Sequence record: LR756501.1 | Length of the DNA stretch: 64,000 nucleotides | Direction: 5' to 3' (one strand) | Shown: positions 21,162-50,479 of the stretch, piece after piece | How the letters are laid out: each line of letters begins with the position of its first letter | Position numbering within the stretch: position 1 is the first letter of the stretch | Notes under the pieces: model-generated | What the model saw: only the letters and a program-made list of their open reading frames with translations | The model's database searches: none | Told to the model about the DNA's origin: nothing | Translations under genes and position numbers: made by a program

Positions 21162-22376
21162 ATGATTAGCAACTACGATAATTTCATGAACGAAAGCCTA
21201 AAGAAAGAATTTACTAAGCTTCTTCATAACATCACCAAACACTTTGGCAACGAAGATAATATGGAAAAACTTGAAGCTGATCTTATTAGATTACTCAACG
21301 GTTACAAGAATAATATATTGTCTGGTCAAATCAGAAAAATAGATAATAATTTCATAGAAGGTATTAAACACGAAGTTAATAAAGACGTTGTTGAATTACT
21401 TAACATTGATACATTTTTTAGAGGTATAAACAACCTTAAAGTTAAAGGCAAAGACAAGAAAATAGAAGAATATTTTAACGATTATATCGCTTCTATTCCT
21501 AATAGATTAAAGACATTATATAATTCAGAGCAAGATGTTAAACTTGACGATCCACACGACGTAGATACAGAAGATATGTATTACGATCCTTATCTTGACG
21601 ATAACGAATTTTCAGAATGGCGTAAAGTTGTTTCTACAGCACCAAGATTCAGAGTTAAAAGAAGAAGATTTGAAATAGAAAAGGCCTCTTTACATATCGA
21701 ATTACTTAAAATGAGAGATTGGTTAGCTGAGAACGACAAGAAATTAGTGATAGTTCTAGAAGGTAGAGACGCTGCAGGTAAAGGTTCTTTCATTAGAACA
21801 GCAACAGAAAATCTAGCACCAGCTTATTATAAAATAAATACATTTGGTGTTCCAACACAAGAAGAGAAAGAACATTGGTTTGAAAGATACGAAAAGGTTT
21901 TACCTACAACACAACAGATCGCTTTTTACGATAGAAGTTGGTACAATAGAGCTGTAGTTGAACCAGTTATGGGTTATTGTACAACAGATCAATATTCAGA
22001 ATTTATGAGAGACGTTGTGCCATTTGAAGAAAGTTTAATTGATAGTGGTATTTATCTTATCAAATTATGGTTCTCTATTACTGATAAAACACAAGAATTA
22101 AGATTTAAATTAAGACAAACAAGCCCTATTAAATATTGGAAGTTCTCACCAAATGACGCCAAGGCAATGGAAAAATGGGACGCCTATACCGCTTATAAAG
22201 AAGAAATGTTTAGAACAACATCGACTGAAAAATCTCCTTGGGTTATAGTAGATTCAAATGATAAGAGAGTGGCAAAACTTAACGCTATGAGATATATCTT
22301 AAATCAAATTCCTTACGATAATAAGAAAGAAGAGATATTAGAAGTATATCCCGAAGTTGTATATCCTATTATATAA
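21162..22376 (+). CDS. ppk2: Polyphosphate kinase 2 with ~170-aa N-terminal extension
   Basis: LEGRDAAGKG, YDRSWYNRAVVEPVMG; starts MISNYDNFMNE. Confidence 0.95.
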   Translation: MISNYDNFMNESLKKEFTKLLHNITKHFGNEDNMEKLEADLIRLLNGYKNNILSGQIRKIDNNFIEGIKHEVNKDVVELLNIDTFFRGINNLKVKGKDKKIEEYFNDYIASIPNRLKTLYNSEQDVKLDDPHDVDTEDMYYDPYLDDNEFSEWRKVVSTAPRFRVKRRRFEIEKASLHIELLKMRDWLAENDKKLVIVLEGRDAAGKGSFIRTATENLAPAYYKINTFGVPTQEEKEHWFERYEKVLPTTQQIAFYDRSWYNRAVVEPVMGYCTTDQYSEFMRDVVPFEESLIDSGIYLIKLWFSITDKTQELRFKLRQTSPIKYWKFSPNDAKAMEKWDAYTAYKEEMFRTTSTEKSPWVIVDSNDKRVAKLNAMRYILNQIPYDNKKEEILEVYPEVVYPII

Positions 22377-23802: not shown

Positions 23803-26800
23803 TCACTTAAATTCCTCATATGATTTTTTAACAATTTCAGCTAGTTCCTCTTTACTCATAAAAGGATCATCAAGGTACATTTCACCGAGAACCTTTAATA
23901 TCTTACCAACTATCGGTCCTTTTTTTATACCCAATATATCCATTACGTCGTCACCGCTCAACGGTGATTTTGGAGGAGCGGTCTTATCCTTTTCCTCTAA
24001 CTCTGCAAACCTTCTCCTTATATTAGATACCTGGTTTGGCATATTAGAGTCATCTGAGTGTGATACGTTATCAGCGTGTATCACATCAAGAGTGTGTTGA
24101 AGATGTGGACCTAAATCCTGTTTCATCTTTCTTAACGACCTATCACTTATAACACCTTCATCACCAGTCTGTTTTGTTCTCATGTGATGTTCGACAGCAG
24201 TTGCCACAGCGTCAATTATATCACTGGGGTACCTTAATCTTTTCATTATATCCCTAGCCATAAAAGCACCCAACTCTTCGTGTCTGTAAAAATGTACTTC
24301 ATTATCTATTATTTCTCTAGCCTTAGACTTACCTACGTCGTGTAAAAGAGCAGATAATCTTGTAACTAAATCAGGTGGAGTATTCTTTAACACTTCCAAA
24401 GTGTGACGCATAGCGTCGTACTTATGAAACTTATTCTGTTTCATCTTGATAAGTTTATCAAGCTCAGGAAAAATATATTTAGATAATCCTAATATTTGCA
24501 ATAATCTAATTGCCTTATCTGGAGTTTTAGTTAGAAGCATTTTATCTAATTCTTCTCTTATCCTTTCGGAAGAAATGTTTTGTAATTTCTTAGCGTTTCT
24601 CTTTAAACTCCTTATCATAAAGAGTGGCAACTTCCAACCGTATTTTGTTGCAAATCTTACAGCCCTTAACATTCTTAAAGGATCATCCGTGAAAATAACA
24701 TCAGGATCAAGTGGTGTTCTAACTATACCAGCCTTGATATCATCCTTACCCATACCTGTTAAATCTAATATTTCGTCAGTAGATAAATCTTTTAAAAGCG
24801 AATTTACGGAAAAATCGCGACGAAAAACATCATCTTTCAATGTCCCTTGTGATACATCTGGTTTACGATCCCCTTCAAAATATGTTTCCTTTCTTGGCAT
24901 AACACATTCAATATCAATATCTGATAAGTCTTCACCGTTGAATTTTTGTCTTCTAAGTGAGAATTTAGCTGTGCCGAATCTAGGGTATATAACAGGGTTT
25001 CCTTTTGTGTGTATTCCTAATTCTTTTGTAATCCAATCTGCGAATTTGATTCCACCGTCGGGAACGTTTATAAGTAGGTCAACGTCTTTAGGATCGTTGC
25101 CCATAAGTTCGTCGCGTACGGCTCCACCAGCAATAAAAACTTTGCCTTCCCATTCAGTTCCTTTGATAGTTTGTTTTATCAATCCTACTGCTGCTTTTAC
25201 TTTTTCTGGTGTTATTGCTTCATTTAACATATTATGATTTTCTTGTATTATTTTCTTTTTAACTTTTCCAGAACGCGAAGATAGTGAAAATTTTTCATTT
25301 ACTCCGTATAAACCAGTGATTTTACTTTCTCCTCTTTCTCCCCATCCCATGTCTTTATCATTATTTTTAAAATGATAAGTGACTACATATTCTTGTTCAA
25401 CTGGTTCTTCTGGTTCATCGTCTTCCACATTAAATTCATCGTCATGGTACTGGTGAGGCCAAAATGGATTTTCATATCTTTCAACGTATTTTGGTTTTAC
25501 TTCTCTAATTATAGCGTATAATTGTTTATCACCAAATTCGACTTTATCTCCCACTTTATATTTTGGTTCTTCCCAATCTTCTTCACCATATGGATCTAAT
25601 TCATCTACATTTTCATTTACACCGTTTTTTTCTAATCTATCTTCATCCATTAAACCATAACCTAAATATCTGTGTGAATTTTTAAAATAATAATCAACAG
25701 TATATTCTCTTTTATATGGATCGAATTCTTTAATAATAGCGTATTTATCGTGACTAATATTGATCTTATCACCATTTTTATATTTAGGTCCATCTTCCCA
25801 TCTTTCTTCGCCATAAGGATCTAATTCGTCTAATTCTACTGGTTCGTATTTTTTAAAAGCCCACTCTGAATACCACCCTGGAAAACCTTTGATAGAAATA
25901 CCAGATTTACTTATACCAGATACTTCGTAATTATTATATCTACTGAAAATAGTACTGCCAGCAATAACGAAATCTTTATCAACCCTAACTATATCTCCAA
26001 CTTTAATTTCATTATCTACATTCTCTCCCAACCAGTCTTCTTCTCCATATGGGTCATTGGGATTAAAAACTCTTGGTAATGGATTGTTAGTGAAATATTC
26101 TCTCATTTCATCTAAATTAAATTGCAGTGCACTTGCGTTATTACTAGCAACAAAGAATTTTTTATCTTTTATACTATAACCAGTTATAACATATCCTTTA
26201 CCTCTTGTGAAACAATCTCCAAAATTGGCTTTTAGAGTTTTTTTACATATTATTTTACTAGACACTTTAAAATCTTCTAAAGATTCATCCACATTTTCAT
26301 TCAATGCTCCTATTCTCCTCATTATTTCTCTTGCTCTTTTACTACCACCTTTAGGATAATTCATCATAGAATTATATCTACCCTTATCATATGCTATATC
26401 CTGTCCTTCAAATTGTCCTGCTGTTGGATCTAATATTTCACCTTTACTGTCTCTCATAAACCAATGGGTTTCACCTTCGTCAAGTCCTTCAGGCCAAGAA
26501 AGATGACTTAATACATAAGTTTTCCAATCACTGGATGGACCTCCAAGCATCCAATAAAGAGCTTCTGTAGCAGCGTAACAATGTCCTGCTAATGGATTAT
26601 CAAACTCTTTATTCCACATACCTTTCAAAAGATCTTTAGTTAAGACTGATTGAATCTTTTTTATCAAATTATCGTACTCAAAATTTTCTTTTAAGAGACC
26701 GATCTTATAATCACCTATAAGATATTTCAATCTATCTTGATGTATTTGTCCCTTCTTAAATAATTGAGAATCTTCTATACATTCATCTATTGTTCTAGGA

Positions 26801-27504
26801 TTCCAACGATCTGGTAAAGGTACAAAAATATGTTGAATATTAAATTTCTTAAAATAAGGAATACATAACTTACAGGTAAATTGTGTCTTAAAGAACAATG
26901 TTCCTGTTTTTGGAAAATAACCAGCTACATAAATATCTGCACCATCTATATTATAACCTTTAGCAAGGGCATCATTCATTGCTTCAACCTCGGCGTGATT
27001 AGCGTATCCTTGTTTAAGTATTCTATCCAATTTGAATTTAGCGTGAGCAATACCTCTATTATAACCTTCCCCAAGTATCTCGCCACCCTTAACTAAAACT
27101 GCTCCGTATCTTTCAGAATCACTTTTACATTTACGAGCGTTAGTTAAACATATTTTATAGTAAGGATCTTTTATTATAGAAGCAGCCGATTCATTTACTT
27201 CCCAATCTTCTTCACCGTAAGGATCTTCTGCTGTGAATTTTCTTACCCTTTTTCTACCCATTCTTAATCTATCAGTCGAACACCAATAAGAGGAACTAGT
27301 CCCGTCAAGGCCTTCCCCGTCGTGTAAAAGATCAGACCACATGTTATCAAATAAAACTAAAATCGAATTACCATCGTCTTCAACTTGTGTTACTACACCA
27401 GGTTCCCAAGCGTCTACTCTATCGTAATCGATGTATTCTACTCTGTCTCCGATTTCGAAACCAGTTAAATCGTTATATTCAAATAATTTAAATTTAGTTA
27501 TCAC
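23803..27504 (-). CDS. 1233-aa polyprotein: SH3-like modules, 4 DPYGEE tags, CMP/dCMP-type deaminase, HC..H..D domain, CCA tRNA nucleotidyltransferase + HD domain
   Basis: GTG start MITKFKLFE; HAEVEA..CKLC; GGAVRD..KDVDL, RRDFSVN, LRMLRAVRF, LLHDVGK. Confidence 0.9.
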   Translation of the reverse strand: MITKFKLFEYNDLTGFEIGDRVEYIDYDRVDAWEPGVVTQVEDDGNSILVLFDNMWSDLLHDGEGLDGTSSSYWCSTDRLRMGRKRVRKFTAEDPYGEEDWEVNESAASIIKDPYYKICLTNARKCKSDSERYGAVLVKGGEILGEGYNRGIAHAKFKLDRILKQGYANHAEVEAMNDALAKGYNIDGADIYVAGYFPKTGTLFFKTQFTCKLCIPYFKKFNIQHIFVPLPDRWNPRTIDECIEDSQLFKKGQIHQDRLKYLIGDYKIGLLKENFEYDNLIKKIQSVLTKDLLKGMWNKEFDNPLAGHCYAATEALYWMLGGPSSDWKTYVLSHLSWPEGLDEGETHWFMRDSKGEILDPTAGQFEGQDIAYDKGRYNSMMNYPKGGSKRAREIMRRIGALNENVDESLEDFKVSSKIICKKTLKANFGDCFTRGKGYVITGYSIKDKKFFVASNNASALQFNLDEMREYFTNNPLPRVFNPNDPYGEEDWLGENVDNEIKVGDIVRVDKDFVIAGSTIFSRYNNYEVSGISKSGISIKGFPGWYSEWAFKKYEPVELDELDPYGEERWEDGPKYKNGDKINISHDKYAIIKEFDPYKREYTVDYYFKNSHRYLGYGLMDEDRLEKNGVNENVDELDPYGEEDWEEPKYKVGDKVEFGDKQLYAIIREVKPKYVERYENPFWPHQYHDDEFNVEDDEPEEPVEQEYVVTYHFKNNDKDMGWGERGESKITGLYGVNEKFSLSSRSGKVKKKIIQENHNMLNEAITPEKVKAAVGLIKQTIKGTEWEGKVFIAGGAVRDELMGNDPKDVDLLINVPDGGIKFADWITKELGIHTKGNPVIYPRFGTAKFSLRRQKFNGEDLSDIDIECVMPRKETYFEGDRKPDVSQGTLKDDVFRRDFSVNSLLKDLSTDEILDLTGMGKDDIKAGIVRTPLDPDVIFTDDPLRMLRAVRFATKYGWKLPLFMIRSLKRNAKKLQNISSERIREELDKMLLTKTPDKAIRLLQILGLSKYIFPELDKLIKMKQNKFHKYDAMRHTLEVLKNTPPDLVTRLSALLHDVGKSKAREIIDNEVHFYRHEELGAFMARDIMKRLRYPSDIIDAVATAVEHHMRTKQTGDEGVISDRSLRKMKQDLGPHLQHTLDVIHADNVSHSDDSNMPNQVSNIRRRFAELEEKDKTAPPKSPLSGDDVMDILGIKKGPIVGKILKVLGEMYLDDPFMSKEELAEIVKKSYEEFK

Positions 27505-28069
27505 TCCCTGTATATACTATTTTTTCGTTATCTTTTCTTACTATACTTGCACCGTCTTCTGATACCTTGTAATTTTTTTGATTATATAAATAAAAATAAC
27601 CTTTAGTCTTATCATCCATCATGTAATTAACTTGTATATAATTATATAAAAATTTCTCTACACAATAATGATAAACTCTATATCTATCTTCTGTACAATC
27701 AAAACTAATTATCCAAGGATTTACTTCATTCTGTAACTCTAAAAGTAAAGCAAATACAGTATTAATAACTTTAACTGCGTCTTTTTTATCTGTATTTTTA
27801 AATTTAATTTCGTAGTGAACGTCCTTATTCTGTAAGTACTGTTCTTCGTCCATAAAATCAAGTGTTAAAAAATTATTCCAATATTCAGTATCTTTCAATT
27901 TATTAAAGAAACTTAACCTAGCGTAATAAGTGGTATCTTTACCAGTGAACCTATAAAGATATAAATCGAAGTTATCTCCTTCTTCTGTGCCGTGTTCTAC
28001 ACTAACCAATTCATAGTCATAGATATTGGTTTGGTCAAATAATTCAAATAATTTAAATTTCTTTATCAT
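27494..28069 (-). CDS. Hypothetical protein, CTS-like leader
   Basis: MIKKFKLFE. Confidence 0.75.
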   Translation of the reverse strand: MIKKFKLFELFDQTNIYDYELVSVEHGTEEGDNFDLYLYRFTGKDTTYYARLSFFNKLKDTEYWNNFLTLDFMDEEQYLQNKDVHYEIKFKNTDKKDAVKVINTVFALLLELQNEVNPWIISFDCTEDRYRVYHYCVEKFLYNYIQVNYMMDDKTKGYFYLYNQKNYKVSEDGASIVRKDNEKIVYTGSDN

Positions 28070-28929
28070 AATTCTTCTAATATTGTTCTTGCGGATTCAA
28101 TTGCTTCATCGTATTCGTATGAAACACCATCTGGTCCTTCAGCACCGTCAACTCCGTTTATTTCAAAATCAAACCAATTATTATCAGTCATCCACATACA
28201 ATCGGCTAAATCTTGATCTGTCCATCCTAGTTCAGTTGCTTTTACTACTGCGTCTCTATTATAATAATATTTGCCATTTTCTTCGAATCTTATTCTAATA
28301 TCACCAGTTGGATAAACTGTTACCCAATTCTCACCTTTTTTTAGTTCGGCTATTGCTTCGCCGTAATACCAAAAGGCGTCTTGTTTATTATCTGCTATTT
28401 TATCGTGAAGATAAATCACTTCAATTTCGTACTGTTTATCTTCCCAATTTTCTTCACCGTACGGATCTAATTCACTATTATCAGCGTTTTCTCTTACATC
28501 AGCCCACACGTTGATTTCTCTTTTTCTACCTTTTTCTGTTCCAGTCATATTCATTCCTCTCCTTTTATAAAATTCATTTGATTTAATATTATCTTGTGTA
28601 GTCTTCAATCTTCTTGGTTTTGGTACCATTTCAAATAATGCTTTACCTATACCCATTGATTGAAAATCTTTTCTTACTCCTATTTCATGTATAGTATTCC
28701 AACCATCTCTTCTCTCGTGAAAATGAACAAAACCAATAACCACACCATCAGATTCAGCTACCATAAGTTCGTCATATTTCATAGCATCTATAAGAGCCAC
28801 GTTCATAACAAAACCAAGTTCGTCTCTGAGTTGATTAGTTATCTTTTTAATATCTTTAAGGTCAGACTCTTTACCTAATCTATAAGATATATTATTAAAT
28901 TGTTCGTACAGTCTGAACTCTGTTATCAT
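28066..28929 (-). CDS. GNAT acetyltransferase domain + DPYGEE + unknown domain
   Basis: MITEFRLYE; IGVRKDFQSMGIGKALF acetyl-CoA motif. Confidence 0.8.
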   Translation of the reverse strand: MITEFRLYEQFNNISYRLGKESDLKDIKKITNQLRDELGFVMNVALIDAMKYDELMVAESDGVVIGFVHFHERRDGWNTIHEIGVRKDFQSMGIGKALFEMVPKPRRLKTTQDNIKSNEFYKRRGMNMTGTEKGRKREINVWADVRENADNSELDPYGEENWEDKQYEIEVIYLHDKIADNKQDAFWYYGEAIAELKKGENWVTVYPTGDIRIRFEENGKYYYNRDAVVKATELGWTDQDLADCMWMTDNNWFDFEINGVDGAEGPDGVSYEYDEAIESARTILEEL

Positions 28930-29756
28930 ACTTTCTTAATTTTTTCTAAATCGTTTTCTATTTTACCACATAAATCACATTGTAAAAAATATTTCATTAC
29001 TCTTTCAAAATTTTCAGGATTACGCATTACTCTACTTCTCAAAGACCATTTATGTTCACATTCTTTTATTTTAACTTTTTCTGCTGGTTCTAATTTACCG
29101 TTCCTAAACCATCTTGTTCCTTCTGATAATCTACCTTTACTGTACCATCTTATTTTTACCAACTTATTAACTTCAAGTGGTGTTATCTCCTCGGGTGATA
29201 CGTTATAACAATATCCGTCTTTACCATTCCCGTTACAATCGTGACCGTCGTCAAACGTTTTATCAAATTGCACACCAATTTCTTGACCACCGCTTCTTAC
29301 CCTTATAACAGTACCCTCAAATCCTTCTATTTCTCTATTGGCTCCGTGATAACCGTTATTAACGTAGTGATATATAACTCTTTGACCCAATTCAAAATTA
29401 TCGTTTTTTCCTTCGTTTAATAATTTTCCTTTTTTGTACCATCTTATTTTAGGAGGAGTTTTATCTTCTAATTCAACAAAATTGCTAGTTAAATAATAAG
29501 AAGATCTTGTTGGATCTTCATTATTATCACCAGCCATCAAATTAGTATTGAATCTATTATCAAATTTAATGAGTATTTCTCTCTTTTGTGATTTATCCCC
29601 AGCCTCGTAAAAATTTATAATATTTCCAACTTCCCCTTTAAAAGTAATATCATTATATTTACCAGTAACAATTACTCTATCCCCAGCACTGAAATTACCA
29701 TCTGGATCGTAATCTGTATATTGATTGGACTCGAATATTTTAAACTTTCTTATCAT
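28926..29756 (-). CDS. Tandem SH3-like protein with three RW[YF]xxG[KR]L motifs
   Basis: MIRKFKIFE; FSAGDRVIV, FELGQRVIY. Confidence 0.75.
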   Translation of the reverse strand: MIRKFKIFESNQYTDYDPDGNFSAGDRVIVTGKYNDITFKGEVGNIINFYEAGDKSQKREILIKFDNRFNTNLMAGDNNEDPTRSSYYLTSNFVELEDKTPPKIRWYKKGKLLNEGKNDNFELGQRVIYHYVNNGYHGANREIEGFEGTVIRVRSGGQEIGVQFDKTFDDGHDCNGNGKDGYCYNVSPEEITPLEVNKLVKIRWYSKGRLSEGTRWFRNGKLEPAEKVKIKECEHKWSLRSRVMRNPENFERVMKYFLQCDLCGKIENDLEKIKKV

Positions 29757-29793
29757 CTTTTCTATATATAAAAATAAAAAAGAGATAGTTTGA

Positions 29794-38812: not shown

Positions 38813-38815
38813 TAG

Positions 38816-38887
38816 TCACCCCAACGGAAGTCGAATCCGTATCTTCGCTGTGAGAGAGCGATTACCTAACCATTAGTAGATGGGGCG
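38816..38887 (-). tRNA. tRNA-Glu(CTC)
   Basis: Cloverleaf; anticodon arm tcgct-CTCTCAC-agcga. Confidence 0.88.
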
Positions 38888-38899
38888 TTATGTAATTTG

Positions 38900-38974
38900 T
38901 ACTCCCGACGAGACTCGAACTCGCAAATCTTCGCCGTGAAAGGGCGATGTCCTAACCAATTAGACGACAGGAGC
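38900..38974 (-). tRNA. tRNA-Glu(TTC)
   Basis: tcgcc-CTTTCAC-ggcga. Confidence 0.92.
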
Positions 38975-38990
38975 ATTTAGTTTCATTGTG

Positions 38991-39064
38991 TGACGCTATG
39001 GGGATTCGAACCCCAGATTTCAAGGATGAAAACCTTGCGTCCTGACCAACTAGACGATAGCGCC
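38991..39064 (-). tRNA. tRNA-Glu(TTC)
   Basis: caagg-TTTTCAT-ccttg. Confidence 0.9.
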
Positions 39065-39114
39065 AAAAATCTTAAAAACTTCTTAATATATATATTGAAA
39101 TAGAAATTGTTTAT

Positions 39115-39540
39115 TTAAACACTATCCTTGATATTCTTTTGTTCTACCGTCAATATTTGCCCTCTGAACCAAGGAGATAAGAAAATCTCTTTATCATCGT
39201 CATACATAACAGCTTCTTGTTCGAAGCCTTCACCAATGCCGTCAGACATTTGACCTTGAGTATAACTTTTCAGAACTTCTACTTCTTCGTCATTTAAGAG
39301 TTCTCTTGATTGGTACTCAATAATAGCGTAGAGAATACCAGCCTTGTAAGCGAACCTCATATATCCACCTTTAACACCTCTGTCTATAAGACATTGCTGA
39401 CCCGGATAATGTTTATCTCCAATTCTAAATGCTTCGTGGAAATATTCTGAAAAACAATCTTGGCAATCTATACCGTCTAATTTGCTTCTATCGTCGATGT
39501 TTGACGAACCAGCTGGTCCTTTTACTGTGATTTTATACAT
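39115..39540 (-). CDS. Hypothetical protein
   Basis: 141-aa ORF. Confidence 0.7.
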   Translation of the reverse strand: MYKITVKGPAGSSNIDDRSKLDGIDCQDCFSEYFHEAFRIGDKHYPGQQCLIDRGVKGGYMRFAYKAGILYAIIEYQSRELLNDEEVEVLKSYTQGQMSDGIGEGFEQEAVMYDDDKEIFLSPWFRGQILTVEQKNIKDSV

Positions 39541-39817
39541 TTTCTAGTTTGTTTTTTGCTTCATTTAAAACTTTTATAAGAACGTCTATTGATTTAGGAT
39601 TTGTAAAAGTCAATACTGCCTCAGGTTTAATATCTTCAAATTTACCTTGTGGTCCGTCTTCGTCATATTCACCAATTTCAAAAGGTTCAGTATTCTTAAA
39701 AAGAACAATCACTTTATTTTCATCCAAAGATTTGTTGTTCATTATAGATATATCACCTTTACCAAATTCTGCCAGTGTACAAATTATTCCATTAACTTTA
39801 GCGTTGAGATATACCAT
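39533..39817 (-). CDS. Hypothetical protein
   Basis: 94-aa ORF. Confidence 0.7.
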   Translation of the reverse strand: MVYLNAKVNGIICTLAEFGKGDISIMNNKSLDENKVIVLFKNTEPFEIGEYDEDGPQGKFEDIKPEAVLTFTNPKSIDVLIKVLNEAKNKLENV

Positions 39818-39818
39818 T

Positions 39819-40082
39819 TTACCTTTTCTTTTTAGTATCTTTCTTGGATTCTTTCTTGTCTTTCCTTACTTCTTTCTTTTCAGATTTAGCTTCTTTCTTA
39901 GCTTCTTTCTTAGCTTCGGCTTTGGCTTCAGTTGCAGTCTTTTCAGCCTTGAAGGCGTCTTTATAATCTTTCTTAGCTGCGTAAGCCCAACCTCTTTCAG
40001 TCATGGAATTGATTTTGATAATGTCTTCCATAGTCTTGTCGTTAACTTTAACGAATTCATCACCTTTTCTGAGAACCTTCAT
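39819..40082 (-). CDS. Small protein with K/E/A-rich repetitive tail
   Basis: AKAEAKKEAKKEAKSEKK. Confidence 0.7.
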   Translation of the reverse strand: MKVLRKGDEFVKVNDKTMEDIIKINSMTERGWAYAAKKDYKDAFKAEKTATEAKAEAKKEAKKEAKSEKKEVRKDKKESKKDTKKKR

Positions 40083-40117
40083 ACTTTTCGTGTTTTTTAA
40101 GATTAGTAAATAAAAAT

Positions 40118-40244
40118 ACAGTTCCAGTTAGATCAGTCACGCGTCTCTACTGCCTTAATTATTCCCTCTTTGTCCTCTTTCGAGATTAGGCTACAGACTC
40201 GATGCCTGTAGCACGCCCAACGCGTAGGGAAGCTGGTTTACTGC
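40118..40244 (-). ncRNA. Candidate structured ncRNA
   Basis: Closing pairing gcagt..ccag/ctgg..actgt; gctacag/ctgtagc hairpin; ctc-GAAA-gag. Confidence 0.45.
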
Positions 40245-40250
40245 ATTTAG

Positions 40251-40323
40251 TAGCAATGGAGGGACTTGAACCCCCAACCTCGAAGGTATAAGCTTCTTGC
40301 GCTAACCATTGCGCCACATTGCT
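40251..40323 (-). tRNA. tRNA-Ile(TAT)
   Basis: gaag-CTTATAC-cttc; normal D and T arms. Confidence 0.85.
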
Positions 40324-40329
40324 ATTTAG

Positions 40330-40401
40330 TTGCGGAGGAGGGGATCGAACCCTCGACCTTCAGATTATGAGCCTGACGAGCTACCGCTGCTCTACTCCAC
40401 G
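40330..40401 (-). tRNA. tRNA-Met(CAT), initiator-like (C1xA72)
   Basis: tcagg-CTCATAA-tctga; D arm gagcagcggtagctc. Confidence 0.88.
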
Positions 40402-40416
40402 ATATATTTTTCCTTG

Positions 40417-40489
40417 TAGCGGAAGAGGGATTCGAACCCCCGACCTACGGGTTATGAGCCCGGCGAGCTGGCCACTGCTCTATTCCGCA
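40417..40489 (-). tRNA. tRNA-fMet(CAT)
   Basis: GGG/CCC anticodon stem, 1:72 mismatch. Confidence 0.9.
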
Positions 40490-40503
40490 ATATTTCTTAT
40501 TAG

Positions 40504-40593
40504 TAGCGGGGATCCGATTCGGACGGATGATGACTTTTCACAAGCCATTTTGGGTTATGAGCCCAATGAGTTAGTCCACTACTCTACCCCGCG
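40504..40593 (-). tRNA. tRNA-Met(CAT), initiator-like with long variable arm
   Basis: ttggg-CTCATAA-cccaa; ~21-nt variable region; T loop TCCGAAT. Confidence 0.7.
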
Positions 40594-40705
40594 ATATATT
40601 TTAAATTGTGTTACCCAATCACTTTCGTGAATACAGCCTCTCTGTCTATAAGGAGTAACCACAATTTATTTTTTAGTCAAAATTTCAAAGTACAATTTCA
40701 CTATG

Positions 40706-40713
40706 CAAATATA
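40706..40713 (-). promoter_or_regulatory. Bacteroidota-type -7 element for the Met/Ile tRNA block
   Basis: TATATTTG; boxA-like GTACTTTGAA at 40684-40693. Confidence 0.6.
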
Positions 40714-40740
40714 CGATAATCATTTCAATTAAAAAAATTT

Positions 40741-41271
40741 TTAAAAATCTTTTATACACCTTAAAGAATATCCATATTTCTTATCACCATCAATCTTTCC
40801 TACACTCGACACTCCATCAAATAAGAAGTAAACCCAAGCTGTTGAAGCGTCTCTTTCTGTTGAACTCCAGTAATAAGAATGAGTATTCATATTTTCTCTT
40901 ATCTTCTTATCAGCGTTATACCTACCATTAAACAAAGAATTAAAACCATTCTTATCTTCTAACTTATCTGCAGCAAACTGTTTACCTATTGTGAGAAACA
41001 ATTTATTCCATTCACTTACTCTTGGAATATGCCAACCATCTGGACAGATACCTTTCATTTGTGAAGTATCTGGTTTTCTTTCATTTAGAATGGTTGTATA
41101 GTTATATAAAGTTGTATCATTATATTTCAAATTTTCACCCATCCAAGTTTGTTCTCCGATTTTGATCCACTTGTAAGATTTGTTATCCCTATTATCAATG
41201 AACGTTCCTTTTGTTTGTGCATTCAATAAGAATGTAGTTAAGACAAACAATAATGTAATTAACCTTTTCAT
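40741..41271 (-). CDS. FISUMP-domain exported protein
   Basis: Signal peptide; TWMGENLKY, ICPDGWHIP, GYSLRCIKD. Confidence 0.85.
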   Translation of the reverse strand: MKRLITLLFVLTTFLLNAQTKGTFIDNRDNKSYKWIKIGEQTWMGENLKYNDTTLYNYTTILNERKPDTSQMKGICPDGWHIPRVSEWNKLFLTIGKQFAADKLEDKNGFNSLFNGRYNADKKIRENMNTHSYYWSSTERDASTAWVYFLFDGVSSVGKIDGDKKYGYSLRCIKDF

Positions 41272-41292
41272 ATTATTCCGATTTTTAATGAG

Positions 41293-41364
41293 TTGCCCCT
41301 AATGGATTCGAACCATTACACCGAGCTCCAAAAACTCGTGTGCTAACCGTTACACTAAAGAGCA
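41293..41364 (-). tRNA. tRNA-Gln(TTG)
   Basis: cgagt-TTTTGGA-gctcg; U1-A72. Confidence 0.88.
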
Positions 41365-41506
41365 ATATATCTTTAACTATATATTGTTTTATTATCTTTA
41401 AGTTTAGAGATAATTTTTTTTAATCTTTCGTCCCTAGTTTTAATGTACTTCATAAGTCTTTCTTTTCCTTCTGTTGATATGCTCAAAACAGTAAATGTTA
41501 TACCTT

Positions 41507-41761
41507 TCATAATTTAAATTTTTTTAAGTCTAATAATCTTACGTTGCCTTCACCCATTGATAAAACTTTATCTAAAGCTTCTTTATCACCAGGTACCCAT
41601 CCAACGAAGTTATTTTTTAATTTTTCCTCTAACTCGACTAATTTATTTAAGTCGTGGTCACAAAGTTCAAAAAGATATTCTGTTTGTCCTCTGGACCTAT
41701 TAGTTGCTGATGTGAATTCTTCAAAGAACTCTTTACCGTAAGTATCTTGTAGTGTTTTCAT
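41507..41761 (-). CDS. Hypothetical protein
   Basis: 84-aa ORF. Confidence 0.65.
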   Translation of the reverse strand: MKTLQDTYGKEFFEEFTSATNRSRGQTEYLFELCDHDLNKLVELEEKLKNNFVGWVPGDKEALDKVLSMGEGNVRLLDLKKFKL

Positions 41762-41774
41762 AGTTTTATATCTT

Positions 41775-42464
41775 TCATCTTAATTTCATTATTTTAAATA
41801 TGTTACTAATAGTTCCTTTACTAACTTCAAAATGTTTTGATATTTCTTTTTGGTTCATTCCTCCATCATGTAATTCTTTAATTTTTATCTTATCCAATTT
41901 ATACTTGATTTCTTTTATGTTTTTTGATTTTTCTAAAATTTCTTCATAATTATTATCAAAAAATCCATCGTTGAAGTGTAAATCCATATGGCAATTTTTA
42001 CATAAAACAATACATTTCTGTAGTTCTTCTTCTAAATCTCTTTTTATATCACTAATCCCACTATCTAACAACAACCTGGATATGGTGATAATTTTATTTT
42101 TTGGTTCTATGTGATGAAAATCTAATGATCCGCTACATTTATCATACCCACATTTTTCACATTTTATATTATTAACATACTCTAATAATATTTTCTTATT
42201 TCTTGTTCTATAACCGTCAATATCGTAATGCAATTCGTGATGGCAATTATAACATAATAAAGAACATTTTTTTAATTCTTTCTCTATTATAGACCATCTC
42301 AGAATTTCTGATATATTCAAATCCTTATCTTCTCCCTCTTTATGATGAAAACATAATTTATAATAACTATTTTCACCACATTTCTCACATTTGCCCCCCA
42401 AATAATTTATAGCTTTAAATTTTTTAGAATATCTATCTATTTTTAACCATCTAATTTTATCCAT
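41775..42464 (-). CDS. HNH homing endonuclease, tandem HNH + HTH
   Basis: Two CxxC..FHH..LCxNCH units. Confidence 0.88.
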   Translation of the reverse strand: MDKIRWLKIDRYSKKFKAINYLGGKCEKCGENSYYKLCFHHKEGEDKDLNISEILRWSIIEKELKKCSLLCYNCHHELHYDIDGYRTRNKKILLEYVNNIKCEKCGYDKCSGSLDFHHIEPKNKIITISRLLLDSGISDIKRDLEEELQKCIVLCKNCHMDLHFNDGFFDNNYEEILEKSKNIKEIKYKLDKIKIKELHDGGMNQKEISKHFEVSKGTISNIFKIMKLR

Positions 42465-42523
42465 TAGTTGTAATCTTTTTTATTATATATATAAATAAAA
42501 AATACAACTTTTTCTCGTTTTTG

Positions 42524-42594
42524 TAGTTCCATCTGGTCATGATCCAGAACCTTTAGTTTCAGAAACTAACTTGCATCCGTTACAACATGGAACT
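42524..42594 (-). tRNA. tRNA-Gln(CTG), atypical T loop
   Basis: ttagt-TTCTGAA-actaa; T loop ATCATGA. Confidence 0.7.
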
Positions 42595-42599
42595 TTTTG

Positions 42600-42672
42600 C
42601 AGCCCCAACTGGATTCGAACCAATACCCGCTCCTTCAAAGGGAGAAATGCTCAACCATTACACTATGGGGCC
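42600..42672 (-). tRNA. tRNA-Gln(TTG)
   Basis: ctcc-CTTTGAA-ggag; G73. Confidence 0.88.
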
Positions 42673-42681
42673 ATGTTTTTG

Positions 42682-42753
42682 TACCGTGAGGAAATTTCGA
42701 AATTCCGGCCTAGCGAATATGAGTCGCTTGCTCTGCCTCTGAGCTACCACGGC
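42682..42753 (-). tRNA. tRNA with CAT anticodon, Ile2-like (or elongator Met)
   Basis: gagcaagcga-CTCATAT-tcgct resembles E. coli ileX. Confidence 0.8.
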
Positions 42754-42758
42754 GTTTG

Positions 42759-42897
42759 TTGGAAGGGGATGAATCGAACATCCGGTCACGGCTTATGATG
42801 CTTGGTTTGTGTTGCTGTACGTAATTTTTATCCGTTTAAAGTCGAATATCAAATTACGGTTTTTGTTTACGTCGTGTTACCACTACACTACCTTCCA
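42759..42897 (-). ncRNA. tRNA-like element with ~65-70-nt insertion in the anticodon arm
   Basis: Acceptor tggaagg/ccttcca, intact D and T arms; insert holds a cgtaattt/aaattacg hairpin and TACAGCAA. Confidence 0.65.
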
Positions 42898-42914
42898 ATT
42901 TCTATTTCAATACG

Positions 42915-42923
42915 TCAAAGAAC
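42915..42923 (-). promoter_or_regulatory. boxA-like element
   Basis: GTTCTTTGAcgTATTGAAATA. Confidence 0.65.
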
Positions 42924-42940
42924 TTAATCTTTATTATTTG

Positions 42941-43011
42941 AACTCCCAACGGATCCCGAGACCGTATCCAGACTGTGAAAAAGTCTAATCCTTCCTTTAG
43001 ACGATAGGAGC
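42941..43011 (-). tRNA. tRNA-Glu(TTC), atypical T loop
   Basis: agact-TTTTCAC-agtct. Confidence 0.7.
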
Positions 43012-43020
43012 ATATGTAAA

Positions 43021-43052
43021 ACAAAAAACCCAATCATTTCTGATTGGGTTCC
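43021..43052 (-). terminator. Attenuator terminator before the Glu/Met/Ile/Gln array
   Basis: aacccaatca-GAAA-tgattgggtt + U tract. Confidence 0.88.
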
Positions 43053-43073
43053 TCGAATATCTTATTAACATTC

Positions 43074-43154
43074 TTAATATGATATAGTCCCTCCAATCAG
43101 GTTTTGAATCTGTTGCATCTGTTCTTGTATCATATTAATTATTCGAAAGTTCAT
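43074..43154 (-). CDS. Leader peptide MNFRIINMIQEQMQQIQNLIGGTISY
   Basis: 27-codon uORF; contains CTGATTGG (43093-43100), complementary to the terminator 5' arm. Confidence 0.8.
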   Translation of the reverse strand: MNFRIINMIQEQMQQIQNLIGGTISY

Positions 43155-43196
43155 AATATTTATTTTTTACTATTTCTATATATTAGACTAAAAAAG

Positions 43197-43379
43197 TCAT
43201 TTTTTTCTATTTTCAGCAGGATAACCTTTTTCTGTTATCGCCTTCATCAATTCATTTAATGTTACTCCAAACCCTTTATCCTTTAAAACCTCTTGTACTA
43301 CTTCTGTTGGTGCTTCTGATGTAAAACTAACATTCTGTAAGTTAGTGTAATCCATATTCGTAAGATAGTATGCAGTCAT
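43197..43379 (-). CDS. Small hypothetical protein
   Basis: 60-aa ORF; TAATTTTG promoter at 43407-43414. Confidence 0.65.
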   Translation of the reverse strand: MTAYYLTNMDYTNLQNVSFTSEAPTEVVQEVLKDKGFGVTLNELMKAITEKGYPAENRKK

Positions 43380-43443
43380 ATAGTTTTTGTTTTTCTAATT
43401 ATAACACAAAATTAAGAAAAGTTTGCGATATAAAAAAATTTAT

Positions 43444-43740
43444 TTATACTTTTTTAAAAATAGTTTGTGTCCTACCATTGTTAGATACGTACCTAGCTGT
43501 TAGAGTACCATTCTTTAGAAGTCCGTGTAGAAATCCTGAAATCAAATTAAAGTGATAGTAGTAATTAGGTATTAAAGTAATTACTGGTCTATACTTACCC
43601 CAATTTGATGTTCTATAACCACGATTAATTTTATTGAACTGGTTAATAAACTGTTCAACAGTGAATTCACCTGTTAATTCTACTTTTGGAAAAATATAAT
43701 ATTCGAAATAATTCGGCTCCCATTCCCAATACATTTTCAT
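43444..43740 (-). CDS. Hypothetical protein
   Basis: 98-aa ORF. Confidence 0.6.
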   Translation of the reverse strand: MKMYWEWEPNYFEYYIFPKVELTGEFTVEQFINQFNKINRGYRTSNWGKYRPVITLIPNYYYHFNLISGFLHGLLKNGTLTARYVSNNGRTQTIFKKV

Positions 43741-43817
43741 AACTTTAAGATTTATGAAAACTGTCGTGTTTCTGTTACGCCGCCACCTATTTTTAATCAG
43801 ACTAGGAACTGTTTAAT

Positions 43818-44057
43818 TTACCAAGGCATTTCTGCCAAAGCTGCTGAAGTCATATCTTCAGGTATGTTTTTAATTCTCTGATACGTTGCCACATCTTTCA
43901 TTTCAACAAATCCCAAACCCTTCAAATGTGAAATATAAGATCCAATGGTTCCAGTGATTTTCACACCAATTGCTTCTTTCATTTCTTTCTTGGTGAAGAC
44001 TTCGTCGTGTTTGTTAATAAAGTCTTTGGTTAATTGCCATTTATTTACTTTCGCCAT
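43818..44057 (-). CDS. Small winged-HTH-like protein
   Basis: 79-aa helical pattern; TATCTTTG promoter at 44087-44094. Confidence 0.55.
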   Translation of the reverse strand: MAKVNKWQLTKDFINKHDEVFTKKEMKEAIGVKITGTIGSYISHLKGLGFVEMKDVATYQRIKNIPEDMTSAALAEMPW

Positions 44058-44118
44058 CTTGAATAGTTTTTAACTGTTTAACTATACAAAGATACTGCGA
44101 TTTTATCAAATAAAAAAA

Positions 44119-44352
44119 TTATACTACTTCAAATCCTAATCTTTTTATCCAATTCTGGCAATCTTTTTCAGTTGGCATCGAGACAAGATCTATTTCAAAA
44201 TTCTTATCCATCACATGATAACCAACATACTTACCGTCAACTTCCTTCACTTTGATCTTACCACCACCTTCGAGTGTCCAATTCCAAAGTTTCTCAAGTT
44301 CTTCCTTTGAAAACCATTCATTGTAGAACCAATCATTTCTAAAATCTACCAT
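44119..44352 (-). CDS. Hypothetical protein
   Basis: 77-aa ORF. Confidence 0.65.
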   Translation of the reverse strand: MVDFRNDWFYNEWFSKEELEKLWNWTLEGGGKIKVKEVDGKYVGYHVMDKNFEIDLVSMPTEKDCQNWIKRLGFEVV

Positions 44353-44353
44353 A

Positions 44354-44824
44354 TTACCAATTTTTATAAGGATTGTTAATTAAATTTGAATTCAAATATC
44401 TTACTTGTTCTGTAACTTCTTCTGCTACCCAACTTGGTTTTTCAAACCTTTCGTCCACTGAATCCAATTCAATTTCAGCGACAATCAATCCGTCATTATC
44501 ATCCAAGAAAACATCCACTTCCCAAATGTGTCCCTTGAAAGGGATTTTAGTTCTTATTTTCTTGATAACTTTATCACAGAATAAATCAACCATTCTTTTA
44601 CCATCTTCTTCTGGTATAGAGTATTCAAACTCTTCACGAGATATGGTTCCATTACCTTTTATGGTTATGAAACATTCTTTATCTTCTATGATTCTTATTC
44701 TGACTGTCTTTTCAACACTATTGAGAATATATCCTTGAATGTATAATTCACTTGGATATAGTGTTAAGACGTTGTTTAGGAAGGCGTCTGTTTTAGGGAT
44801 TAAAAATTTTCTTTCTATTTCCAT
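44354..44824 (-). CDS. CYTH-domain protein
   Basis: EIERKFL, VRIRI, TIKG, WEVDVF, VAEIEL. Confidence 0.93.
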   Translation of the reverse strand: MEIERKFLIPKTDAFLNNVLTLYPSELYIQGYILNSVEKTVRIRIIEDKECFITIKGNGTISREEFEYSIPEEDGKRMVDLFCDKVIKKIRTKIPFKGHIWEVDVFLDDNDGLIVAEIELDSVDERFEKPSWVAEEVTEQVRYLNSNLINNPYKNW

Positions 44825-44860
44825 TTCGCTAATATAAATAAAAATGTTGAAATTAAAAAA

Positions 44861-45145
44861 TTATCTGCGTTGATTTACGAGAAATTCTATACTGTAAATT
44901 TCTTCTCCTCTTTCTTCACAATCTAAACAATAATATTCGTAGTGCATTTCATCAGCAAAAATATCTTGGTCCCCCCAATCTATATTTTCACTACCACAAT
45001 TTGCACAGACTCCTTGTCTGTCGCTATATTTGTTTGGATTATCACTCCAGTTCTCTTCACCGTAAGGATCTATCTTGCTTCTATCCACTGGTTCTGGTCC
45101 TTGCTCAGGAGTATCTAATTGTTCGTTAAATTTTTTTATTTTCAT
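44861..45145 (-). CDS. Zinc-ribbon protein, xNE leader + DPYGEENW
   Basis: MKIKKFNE; CANC, CLDC. Confidence 0.75.
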   Translation of the reverse strand: MKIKKFNEQLDTPEQGPEPVDRSKIDPYGEENWSDNPNKYSDRQGVCANCGSENIDWGDQDIFADEMHYEYYCLDCEERGEEIYSIEFLVNQRR

Positions 45146-45146
45146 A

Positions 45147-45497
45147 TTAATAATTTGGTTTTAATTCTTCCGCTAAATCTGTATAAGCGTCAACGAATTC
45201 TCTTTCAGTTAATTCCCTTAAAACCTTAATCATATGGTTAGGAACGCCAAATCTTATAGTCATTGTGGTCACATTTTTCCTGAGATCATCAATAATATAA
45301 TAATATAAAATTCCTCTATGTGGATAATCAATAGTAAAAATGAATTCTTTTATGTATTGACTATGTACCTTAATTTCAGTAGGATTTAAATTGAGATTTA
45401 CTGCTATTTCCCTTATAATTTCTATATTATCTCTATCGTCCCATCTTTCTTCACCGTACGGGTCAAATTTATTGAAATTATCAAATTTTTTAATCAT
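45147..45497 (-). CDS. Hypothetical protein, CTS-like leader + DPYGEERW
   Basis: MIKKFDNFNKFDPYGEERW. Confidence 0.75.
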   Translation of the reverse strand: MIKKFDNFNKFDPYGEERWDDRDNIEIIREIAVNLNLNPTEIKVHSQYIKEFIFTIDYPHRGILYYYIIDDLRKNVTTMTIRFGVPNHMIKVLRELTEREFVDAYTDLAEELKPNY

Positions 45498-45501
45498 GAA
45501 A

Positions 45502-45711
45502 CTATATATTAAAAATAGTTTTAATATAATTTCTTATTGGTAATTGCTGTTCGTCTGGTAAAAGTTTAATGGATTCAACCGTAACCTCAAATTCGTCTTC
45601 ACGTAATATTCCAAGAAATAATCTTATTCTTGGCGATGTGTTATTGTAAAGGATCATGTGATGGTCGAGTTTTTCGATATCAACGTAAAGAATGTTATCT
45701 TCGTAAGTCAT
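45502..45711 (-). CDS. Small hypothetical protein
   Basis: 69-aa ORF. Confidence 0.6.
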   Translation of the reverse strand: MTYEDNILYVDIEKLDHHMILYNNTSPRIRLFLGILREDEFEVTVESIKLLPDEQQLPIRNYIKTIFNI

Positions 45712-45740
45712 AATATTTTTTTATTTTTATATCACAAAAA

Positions 45741-46961: not shown

Positions 46962-47220
46962 AAGTTTTGTCGATCCACTTATTTCTTTTTATATTTTTTA
47001 TTTCGTCTTCTGTTGCTGGTTGTCCGTCTATCCAGTACTCTATAAACTCATTTTTACCAACAATAGCAGGACCGTTATCTCTATGAAGTTTACCTTTTTG
47101 TAAATACCAAAGATTTCCATTTTTAAAATCGATAGCTGGTCCATCCACTCTATGAAGATAGGTTCTTCTCCTAACTTCATCTAAATAAAAAATATCTCCA
47201 CATATATCAATACTCTTCAT
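46951..47220 (-). CDS. LHRxDGPA-repeat protein
   Basis: LHRVDGPAI, LHRDNGPAI. Confidence 0.75.
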   Translation of the reverse strand: MKSIDICGDIFYLDEVRRRTYLHRVDGPAIDFKNGNLWYLQKGKLHRDNGPAIVGKNEFIEYWIDGQPATEDEIKNIKRNKWIDKTYEN

Positions 47221-47255
47221 ATTTAATATATTCTATTTTTCTTAATTTGTTTTTC

Positions 47256-48563: not shown

Positions 48564-48597
48564 AGCTAGTTATATATGGCTACTAGTAAATTAAGTT

Positions 48598-50478: not shown

Positions 50479-50479
50479 C

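Follow-up and report, generated by a model that had tools for sequence, protein, structure and literature searches.

The window analysed here, a stretch of 64,000 nucleotides (nt) from sequence record LR756501.1, holds at 23803-27504 on its minus strand a single open reading frame (ORF) with a GTG start and a stop codon at 23803-23805, which encodes a protein of 1233 amino acids (aa), P0001. At least three enzymatic domains and five or six further modules share this one polypeptide, and between them lie short sites ending in Glu and copies of a peptide tag, DPYGEExW. The question raised by this locus is whether such a protein acts in one piece or is a precursor of separate proteins. In our best reading, which we hold tentatively, P0001 would be a capsid-targeted cargo protein of a T4-type phage head, cut by the phage's own head protease.

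The same DNA lies, with 100% identity, at positions 154863-158564 of LR756501.1 and LR756503.1, two records of 735,411 bp each, labelled 'uncultured phage' (window position 1 is genome position 131061 of LR756501). The largest genomes described in 'Clades of huge phages' were put in the Mahaphage clade, with hosts predicted to be Bacteroidetes (PMC7162821). The GTG start is backed by a conserved N-terminus, MI[KTR]xFK[LI]FE, found in the three genes upstream, with which the ORF forms a four-gene array, and at 27 N-termini genome-wide. One contig from the probable source run covers 23500-27800 with zero differences, almost the whole stretch can be tiled with contigs of a second sample, at the cost of at most one substitution and no insertions or deletions (indels), and identical pieces of it occur in two runs from another study. 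Because of the spanning contig, the indel-free tiling and the identical pieces in other runs, the long frame is not an assembly artefact. The misassembly or missed stops that the initial annotation had named as grounds for giving up its reading were seen neither in the contigs, nor in the second record, nor in the relatives, and in four homologues from independent assemblies the frame likewise runs on unbroken. That an assembly or frameshift error fused separate genes is a negligible prospect, since the two GenBank records are identical, the contigs of separate samples agree and the frames of the homologues are continuous; no point was found in its favour.

Read from the N-terminus, P0001 divides into the following features (a slash marks a candidate cleavage point).

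27478..27504, minus strand: N-terminal leader VITKFKLFE, residues 1-9, ending L-F-E; candidate T4-type capsid-targeting/processing peptide
27226..27477, minus strand: small beta module 1 (SH3/Tudor-like), residues 10-93, by BLASTP to a neighbouring protein's repeats
27202..27225, minus strand: DPYGEEDW tag 1, residues 94-101, followed by E-V-N-E/S, residues 102-106
26686..27189, minus strand: zinc deaminase module, residues 106-273, with HAE and CxxC; ends L-L-K-E/N
26296..26685, minus strand: YunG-like domain, residues 274-403; His-Cys, His-Trp and Asp conserved; ends A-L-N-E/NVD
26056..26295, minus strand: module of unknown fold, residues 404-483 ('CKKTLKANFG...'), no family match
26032..26055, minus strand: DPYGEEDW tag 2, residues 484-491, followed by L-G-E/NVD
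25822..26022, minus strand: small beta module, residues 495-561, SH3-like by sequence pattern alone; weak match to phrog_4317 (E 0.001)
25798..25821, minus strand: DPYGEERW tag 3, residues 562-569
25612..25797, minus strand: small beta module, residues 570-631; ends G-V-N-E/NVD
25573..25596, minus strand: DPYGEEDW tag 4, residues 637-644
25294..25572, minus strand: module of unknown fold, residues 645-737, no family match; ends G-V-N-E/K
25219..25293, minus strand: 25-residue linker, residues 738-762, with an internal Met759; ends M-L-N-E/A
23806..25218, minus strand: class II tRNA nucleotidyltransferase, predicted to be CCA-adding, and HD domain, residues 763-1233, by Pfam, phrog and motifs

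The module order proposed in the initial annotation is borne out, as are its four DPYGEE tags, which stand as DPYGEExW at residues 94, 484, 562 and 637. Two details of that annotation changed. Between the HC..HW..D (YunG-like) domain and the CCA enzyme we count four further modules in place of three, and the SH3 assignment of module 1 is supported only by way of the neighbouring protein: residues 1-78 match both repeats of the adjacent 276-aa protein (BLASTP, E 2e-6 and 1e-3), the second of which matches Pfam SH3_12 (1.2e-5), and direct Pfam matches of module 1 are weak (E 0.1-0.2). Among the middle modules, residues 570-631 were modelled by AlphaFold2 (AF2) as four strands and one helix at a predicted local distance difference test score (pLDDT) of 62-72, and the model of residues 495-561 was poor (pLDDT about 30). 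The AF2 run on residues 478-662 drew on six sequences and reached a pLDDT of 45; for residues 484-662, no homologues of similar length were found.

The deaminase module matches Pfam dCMP_cyt_deam_1 at residues 115-227 (36.1 bits vs a cut-off of 25, 6e-9) and the dCMP deaminase family phrog_174 (4e-8), and its zinc ligands are present in NHAEVEA and TCKLC. The nearest solved structures are dCMP deaminases, at a weak E of 0.004, and TadA was matched at E 4e-4, far below its cut-off. By sequence, the module is placed in the zinc-dependent cytidine/dCMP deaminase superfamily. At the C-terminus, Pfam assigns a PolyA_pol head (790-929), PolyA_pol_RNAbd (966-1017) and HD (1046-1144), with 69.8, 54.7 and 39.9 bits (cut-offs 23, 22 and 22), and this part matches the tRNA nucleotidyltransferase family phrog_2244 (4e-58). 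The best NCBIfam model is CCA tRNA nucleotidyltransferase (254 bits, under the equivalog cut-off of 438.8), with PcnB at 118 bits. Class II nucleotidyltransferases carry the motifs GGxVRD...DxD and RRD and the His-Asp of the HD domain; in P0001 these can be read as GGAVRDELMGNDPKDVDL (GGAVRD..DVD), FRRDFSVNS and LLHDVGK. Judged by its motifs and family matches, the C-terminal part of 471 residues is an unremarkable class II enzyme, probably CCA-adding, that ends in an HD domain. As had been proposed, it begins immediately past MLNE-A, with the border at residue 762 and the domain from 763.

The YunG-like domain matches phrog_12251 (4.5e-15) and scores 17.8 bits (E 0.004) against YunG (PF24585), below the cut-off of 27; the nearest named clusters in a protein atlas, used as a lead only, are YunG and Phage_YunG-like (0.86-0.87). 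Its family, with 1049 representative homologues, consists mostly of stand-alone proteins of 120-170 aa, and some members lie inside very large proteins. His-Cys, His-Trp and Asp-x-Thr are conserved, with Cys38, His76 and Asp88 kept in at least 90%. The AF2 model has a pLDDT of 94. Foldseek with this model found nothing significant, a profile of the family had no match in the PDB, and a literature search on YunG/transglutaminase yielded nothing useful. An exhaustive structural comparison gave matches at Z of about 5 (top Z 5.3) to arylamine N-acetyltransferase, LapG, SseI and transglutaminases, and further ones at a similar Z to protein glutaminase, PeiW, OspI and vasohibin, all of them Cys-His-Asp (or Glu) enzymes. 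From these matches we read the domain as a putative papain/transglutaminase-like thiol enzyme.

Candidate cleavage sites lie at the module borders: LFE (7-9), VNE/S (103-105), LKE/N (271-273), LNE/NV (401-403), LGE/NV (492-494), VNE/NV (629-631), VNE/K (735-737) and LNE/A (760-762). T4 gp21 cleaves after L/I-x-E (PMC9026906). All of the gp21-type sites listed in the initial annotation exist, and what sets them apart is a narrower motif than the generic one, which is at chance level. [LIVM]NE is enriched in P0001 (5 vs 1.09 expected, P 0.0035), and all five copies are at module borders; NENV occurs twice against 0.01 expected, and the count of DPYGEE is also far above chance. E/NVD stands at three borders of P0001 and in one repeat of the phage's scaffold-like protein described below (IAE/NVD). 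Proteome-wide, ENVD occurs 14 times against 4 expected, with seven of the 14 in leader- or tag-bearing proteins and one in the scaffold. Cuts at all eight candidate sites would give pieces of 9, 96, 168, 130, 91, 137, 106, 25 and 471 residues, of which the last has the normal length of a CCA enzyme and starts where the stand-alone enzyme of the phage Lak-A1 starts.

Relatives of P0001 were collected by a search with residues 1-760, which found long homologues in other metagenomes (P0002-P0006). The four that have the CCA enzyme all keep it, with HD, at the C-terminus, and the string of modules ahead of it differs. P0002 (1512 aa) combines the deaminase with the YunG-like domain and additional modules. 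In P0004 (1324 aa), the deaminase is 93% identical and the CCA part about 55%, the left breakpoint of the similar stretch is a tag, and the YunG-like domain is reduced to its first 14 residues, fused to a tag. P0003 lacks both the deaminase and the YunG-like domain and has the same tags and border sites. In P0005, the YunG-like domain comes right behind the leader, and the I-F-E/N of the leader replaces L-K-E/N at the same distance from the domain. The module of residues 404-483 recurs in P0003 and in P0006, where this one shared module stands ahead of a different C-terminal nucleotidyltransferase. Between 'SRSGKV' and 'KKKIIQEN', P0003 carries a module with a TEGHHR motif in place of the 25-residue linker, as does P0002 at the matching place, where a weak DUF1015 match was found (E 1.3e-4); by sequence, this module is possibly ParB/Srx-like. 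Despite the different flanking modules, the borders keep [LIVM]-x-E in the homologues: nearly every junction consists of a tag and [LIVM]-x-E, 2-4 residues after Trp or 2-6 before Asp. W-x-[LVMI]-N-E behind a tag recurs at nine junctions across P0001, P0002, P0003, P0004 and P0006, and the border of the module of residues 570-631 keeps [VI]-[NA]-E in five homologues. Such shuffling at tags illustrates a route by which new multi-enzyme proteins can arise in phages.

The genome has the parts of a T4-type head. The portal matches phrog_213 (1.7e-66), and the major head protein matches phrog_138 (9e-23) and, by tblastn, gp23 and gp24 of T4-like phages. Between the two genes lies that of an 807-aa protein with an N-terminal protease and a repetitive, scaffold-like middle, whose first ~170 residues match a head maturation protease family (phrog_207, 4.9e-27). 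This protease domain is encoded at genome position 73913 to about 74500. It contains 33 [LIV]xE against 18.7 +/- 3.6 in shuffles, among them I-N-E/A at 18-21, I-N-E/S at 171-174 and I-N-E/A at 229-232, which flank the protease domain. Y[IVL][AG]E sites also count among them, twelve in number and repeating every 14 residues. The major capsid protein has Q-M-N-E/N-V at residues 41-46. A phmmer search of the PDB with the protease domain gave no match. By these family matches the genome has the T4-type prohead set of a gp20-like portal, a gp21-like protease and a gp23-like capsid protein. The tblastn search with the major capsid protein also hit five places in the phage's own genome, with the main gene at 76415-78166, which suggests paralogues such as a vertex protein.

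The N-terminal leader links P0001 to a family of proteins that resemble T4 cargo. The T4 capsid-targeting sequence (CTS) is MKTYQEFIAE (10.1101/2021.01.19.427310); in IPIII, residues 1-10 are enough for packaging, positions 4 and 7 serving targeting and 8 and 10 processing (PMC9026906). The leader class MIxKFKLFE stands at the start of 27 ORFs genome-wide, which differ in the codons used for it and are unrelated in their upstream DNA, and the class [FY]x[LIVM][FY]E is found at 20 N-termini against 4.2 in shuffles. A second, larger class follows M-x(2-4)-[FY]-x-x-[FY]-[ILV]-[NK]-E-[ASG], as in MENMLKYQEFINEA and in MISNYDNFMNES of PPK2 in the window. A pattern derived from the T4 determinants, [FYW]xx[FY][LIVM]xE, occurs within residues 2-25 of 57 proteins vs 4.2 +/- 1.9 in shuffles of the same N-termini, and in 32 of the 57 the Glu of the pattern falls on residue 10 or 11, as in MENMLKYQEFINE/A. 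Because the shuffling was done within the N-termini (57 vs 4.2), we reject the idea that the leader is a by-product of their AT-richness. In all, about 76 proteins carry a leader matching the T4 capsid-targeting determinants.

The tag is likewise a property of the genome as a whole. A six-frame scan of LR756501 found 109 in-frame copies of DPYGEE, 103 of them followed by x-W. About 91 proteins carry the tag, out of some 1000 called, which is about 9% of the proteome. Its usual context is K-R-[VI]-[FY]-[ST]-x-[LE]-DPYGEE-[NDE]-W-[ED]-[DE], as in the peptide KRVFSELDPYGEENWEN; D, P, Y, G, E and E are invariant here by the way the copies were searched. Every position is spelled by more than one codon: GAT/GAC, four for Pro, TAC/TAT, four for Gly and GAA/GAG. 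Since synonymous codons vary throughout, selection acts on the peptide and not on a DNA repeat, and a DNA repeat as the origin of the tags is ruled out. Among 106 copies in called genes, 40 lie within a few residues of the C-terminus, in small proteins, 22 near the N-terminus, often directly behind a leader, and 44 are internal. In IMG/VR, at least 120 contig stretches hold the tag, with 261 copies between them, and its placements divide in the same way. Leader and tag occur together in 27 proteins (odds ratio 7.4, p 1.6e-11). Most tagged proteins match no Pfam family; those that do include a GNAT protein, methyltransferases, a phosphoribosyltransferase-like domain, Pol-beta-type nucleotidyltransferases and a gp21-like domain.

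Two other origins for the tag were considered and set aside. A host or bacterial motif does not account for it, since the 72 single matches among 185,579 genomes of bacteria and archaea are close to the number that chance would give (about 70, by a rough estimate), nor is it a Mahaphage-wide feature, with no copies in Lak-A1, itself of that broad clade, vs 103 here. DPYGEE was found in no phage paper in a literature search. The tag is, as far as its codons and placement indicate, a peptide signal of its own, under selection, which travels with the leader system and marks module ends. Because most C-terminal copies have no cut site adjacent to them, the tags are probably kept in the mature proteins, and our guess is that the tag serves docking or retention within that cargo system. 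It is a conserved eight-residue motif specific to this phage group, for which no counterpart was found in the literature. Its role is the most novel part of the finding, and it offers a clean target in the search for a new protein-sorting or docking system and a possible packaging or fusion handle.

Outside the gene for P0001, the window holds 14 further copies of DPYGEE, for example at 573-1500(+), 14795 and 15035(+), and 45070 and 45464(-). Three are in one leader-bearing protein, two of these 14 residues apart, and two small proteins end in ...LDPYGEENWEN and ...LDPYGEEDWNN. Elsewhere in the genome of LR756501, at 11314-11850(-), a 178-aa paralogue of the head-protease domain (45% identical) ends in a C-terminal DPYGEENWSE. 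It has Tyr for the His of GEFDHPD and Arg-Pro for the Ser-Ser of VSSRAAG, and would be inactive because of these replacements if they affect the catalytic residues.

Taken together, the head module, the leader family and the border sites give circumstantial support to the earlier proposal that P0001 is a packaged precursor cut by a gp21-type protease. In this scheme, the nine-residue leader MIxKFKLFE would bring the precursor into the prohead core, where the S77 (gp21-like) protease, fused to the scaffold, would take off the leader and cleave after Glu at the border [LIVM]-x-E sites, mostly [LV]-N-E. The proteins freed would be the deaminase, the YunG-like thiol enzyme, several small beta modules and the 471-residue CCA-adding/HD enzyme, and the fragments would exit the capsid alongside the DNA. 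We infer targeting, cleavage and ejection alike. If the scheme is true, the injected proteome of the biggest known phage would be far larger and more enzymatic than that of any phage studied, and leader, cut sites and tag would form a readable code, by which sequence alone would suffice to predict what uncultured huge phages carry as cargo.

A number of observations weigh against this scheme. All sequencing runs holding the stretch are DNA, and the reading draws on analogy and on conserved sequence patterns. The plain motif [LIVM]xE occurs 24 times in P0001 vs 22.9 in shuffles (P 0.42), and the protease scores 22.9 bits against Pfam S77, below the 27-bit cut-off. The leader of P0001 (F5, L7, F8, E9) interleaves the T4 determinants at the same spacing, and their order is not matched. 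About 76 leader proteins, including PPK2, a DeoC-type aldolase and a radical SAM enzyme, would make a large and odd cargo set. The internal Met759, present nearby in four of five relatives, could yield a free CCA enzyme without cleavage; no phage promoter-like motif was found upstream of it. The tags, which the initial annotation had taken as a feature of this polyprotein, have only four of their 109 genome-wide copies in it. A cleavage site directly behind every tag is not general (12 of 179 in the IMG/VR loci), and C-terminal tags do not behave as removable propeptides, with 8 of 40 preceded by a site vs a background of 16%. Finally, among the tagged proteins is one with a match to the Pfam tail sheath C-terminal domain (E 8e-8); if it is a real sheath, it argues against the tag as a signal for the capsid interior.

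The main alternative, possible but on balance unlikely, is that P0001 stays uncut in the cytoplasm as a beads-on-a-string multi-enzyme. Leader and tags would then dock accessory proteins on a common phage hub, such as the phage's DnaK/DnaJ chaperones or a replication/translation factory, and the linkers would only hold the modules together near tRNA or nucleic-acid substrates. The chance-level count of generic [LIVM]xE agrees with this, and the tag at the extreme C-terminus of 40 small proteins with no cleavage-type sites nearby fits a retained binding motif; the tagged and leader proteins are mostly enzymes or have no assigned function and are not recognisable virion parts. A phage DnaJ gene lies beside the array in the three relatives examined, and a protein with a DnaK-like N-terminus is encoded at genome position 5558-7423. 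The basic-hydrophobic stretch before the tag, K-R-V-F-S, presumably resembles Hsp70-binding segments. What an uncut protein leaves unexplained is why the T4 CTS determinants, with Glu at residue 10-11, should be found in a phage with a T4-type head, and why the conserved border [LIVM]-x-E should be common to the scaffold repeats and the N-terminal part of the capsid protein. It is distinctly doubtful, at the other extreme, that leader and tag form one addressing code marking about 140 proteins (~14% of the proteome) for capsid loading, with injected tRNA-end repair, deaminase, acetyltransferase, methyltransferase and polyphosphate kinase, and with the tag as an exon-shuffling-like in-frame junction.

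Two further explanations concern how the junctions arose or are opened. Tags and leaders might be relics of recombination and the fusion a recent accident with no function of its own: modules in relatives are shuffled exactly at tags, the contrast between 93% and about 55% identity in P0004 starts from a tag, and cross-matches of 20-29 nt in contigs come from the tag DNA of other loci. We consider this improbable, given that 109 of 109 copies are in frame, 103 with the Trp, and that their synonymous codons vary everywhere, as expected of selection on the peptide; the motif also persists over many IMG/VR contigs, and the fusion to the CCA enzyme is kept in at least five divergent relatives. Equally, P0001 might cut itself, with the Cys-His-Asp domain acting as a papain-like peptidase that frees its neighbours. 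Its conserved His-Cys, His-Trp and Asp-x-Thr, the confident model and the best structural matches, mostly Cys-His-Asp enzymes and including the proteases LapG, PeiW and vasohibin, speak for this, and autoproteolytic peptidase domains are a known theme of polyvalent proteins (PMC5512222). A Z of about 5 is weak, however, and the matches also include N-acetyltransferases, deamidases and transglutaminases, which are not proteases; most of the family is stand-alone, in many tagless phages and bacteria. Because relatives that lack the domain have the same junctions (P0003 has none of it and P0004 about 14 residues, with tags and border sites unchanged), it is unlikely to be the processing protease, and self-cutting has a very slight chance of being correct.

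If P0001 is indeed capsid cargo, its closest known parallel would be the T4 internal proteins IPI, IPII and IPIII and Alt (PMC9026906, PMC3012670). Shared with T4 are the head module, the short leader with aromatics three apart and an L/I-x-E end on diverse, poorly conserved accessory proteins, several of them in tandem, the carriage of enzymes into the cell (Alt in T4) and a scaffold rich in cut-type sites. The differences are the about 76 leader proteins in two leader classes, against a handful in T4; the up to eight cuts into separate enzymes proposed here, where T4 cargo loses terminal propeptides only; the joining of protease and scaffold in one polypeptide; and DPYGEExW, which has no T4 counterpart. 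Ejection or inner-body proteins of phiKZ, 201phi2-1 and SPN3US offer a second parallel, with dozens of head proteins, a diverged gp21 homologue that cuts after Glu at short motifs and a large protein mass delivered (PMC9026906, PMC7411985, PMC10052503). The motifs differ, and those sets were defined by mass spectrometry; the system described here is, in both comparisons, known from its sequence. We know of no terminal tag shared among the proteins of phiKZ-type giant phages.

Short terminal peptides that address proteins into an HK97-fold shell are familiar from encapsulin cargo-loading peptides and from the tail by which the HK97 protease is targeted at its C-terminus. Of the 106 tag copies in called genes, 40 are C-terminal, 22 lie near the N-terminus and 44 are internal, which fits such a role. 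In sequence the tag bears no similarity to these peptides, and its acidic-aromatic character also sets it apart. Polyvalent proteins were defined as having 2-15 unrelated effector-type domains, and delivery with the DNA and proteolytic release were proposed for them (PMC5512222). P0001 falls within that definition by its number of domains, and is similar in joining many unrelated enzymatic domains in one phage polypeptide, in varying in content between relatives and in the possible ParB/Srx-like module of those relatives. Unlike in P0001, CCA-adding and YunG-like domains do not occur in the text of PMC5512222, where deaminases appear only as a fold comparison or in references, and no fixed peptide tag between modules is described there. 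The Pfam scan of P0001 in turn found none of the MPTase, ParB, methylase or helicase signature domains and no recognised peptidase. The CCA enzyme of Lak-A1 (PMC7162821) is 30% identical to the C-terminal 471 residues of P0001; it is a stand-alone protein of 417 aa without N-terminal modules, in a tagless genome. The Lak-A1 locus is listed with TAG read as Gln; its CCA frame has no recoded step and should read alike under table 11.

The gene for P0001 is surrounded by other leader-bearing genes and by a promoter-like motif, as follows.

27494..29756, minus strand: three upstream genes of 276 aa, 287 aa and 191 aa, overlapping end to start and forming the four-gene array with the 1233-aa gene
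29762..29770, minus strand: promoter-like motif TATATATAG, 5 nt upstream of the array's first gene; putative function
21162..22376, plus strand: PPK2 gene, second leader class (MISNYDNFMNE/S); leader kept in the orthologues of two relatives

All four proteins of the array begin MI[KTR]xF[KR][LI][FY]E. The 276-aa protein consists of two SH3_12-like repeats, and the 287-aa protein is a GNAT with an internal DPYGEENW (28444-28467), in place of which one lineage of relatives has a methyltransferase. The gene order in relatives is DnaJ, leader-bearing genes and the CCA gene, with PPK2 nearby. A DnaJ-like gene at 29794-30822(+) adjoins the array in divergent orientation, and its place beside the array is kept in the three relatives examined; the DnaK-like N-terminus of the 621-aa protein at genome position 5558-7423(+) was judged by eye. 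PPK2 has an N-terminal extension of ~150 residues, which opens with the T4-CTS-like leader and holds a degenerate tag-like DPYLDDNEFSEW. In the relative that carries P0003 (L211:8001-11576), a 241-aa ORF resembling NUMOD3 homing endonucleases splits the CCA gene inside the HD domain, and the remaining HD/C-terminal part is a separate ORF of 195 aa with a zinc-ribbon-like start.

Motifs of the TTAATATATAG type lie at most 30 nt upstream of 163 called starts genome-wide, including the one at 29762-29770. They stand either 4-6 nt before the ATG, leaving the transcript nearly leaderless, or about 20 nt before it and followed by an A-rich stretch, and by sequence this looks like the phage's own promoter. 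The TATATATA-type motif was considered as a mark common to leader and head genes and rejected: it stands before 163 genes of every kind, among them those for the portal and the capsid protein, and is therefore non-discriminating. Scans for sigma-70 promoters and terminators gave chance-level results.

The window also contains a large set of tRNA genes.

38815..63784, minus strand: 27 tRNA genes, 24 without an encoded 3' CCA

Only three of the 27 thus carry CCA, in agreement with the initial annotation, which had further tied the CCA enzyme to these genes. That link is reasonable but weak, since stand-alone CCA enzymes are common in tRNA-rich phages, and a CCA enzyme alongside tRNA genes would be ordinary in such phages, Lak-A1 being an example. 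That a tRNA-end repair enzyme would be available from injection onward is something we infer from the cargo reading. The tRNA-Met(CAT) call at 40503-40593(-) is 91 nt long vs 72-78 nt for most of the others, and may reflect an intron, a long extra arm or a miscall.

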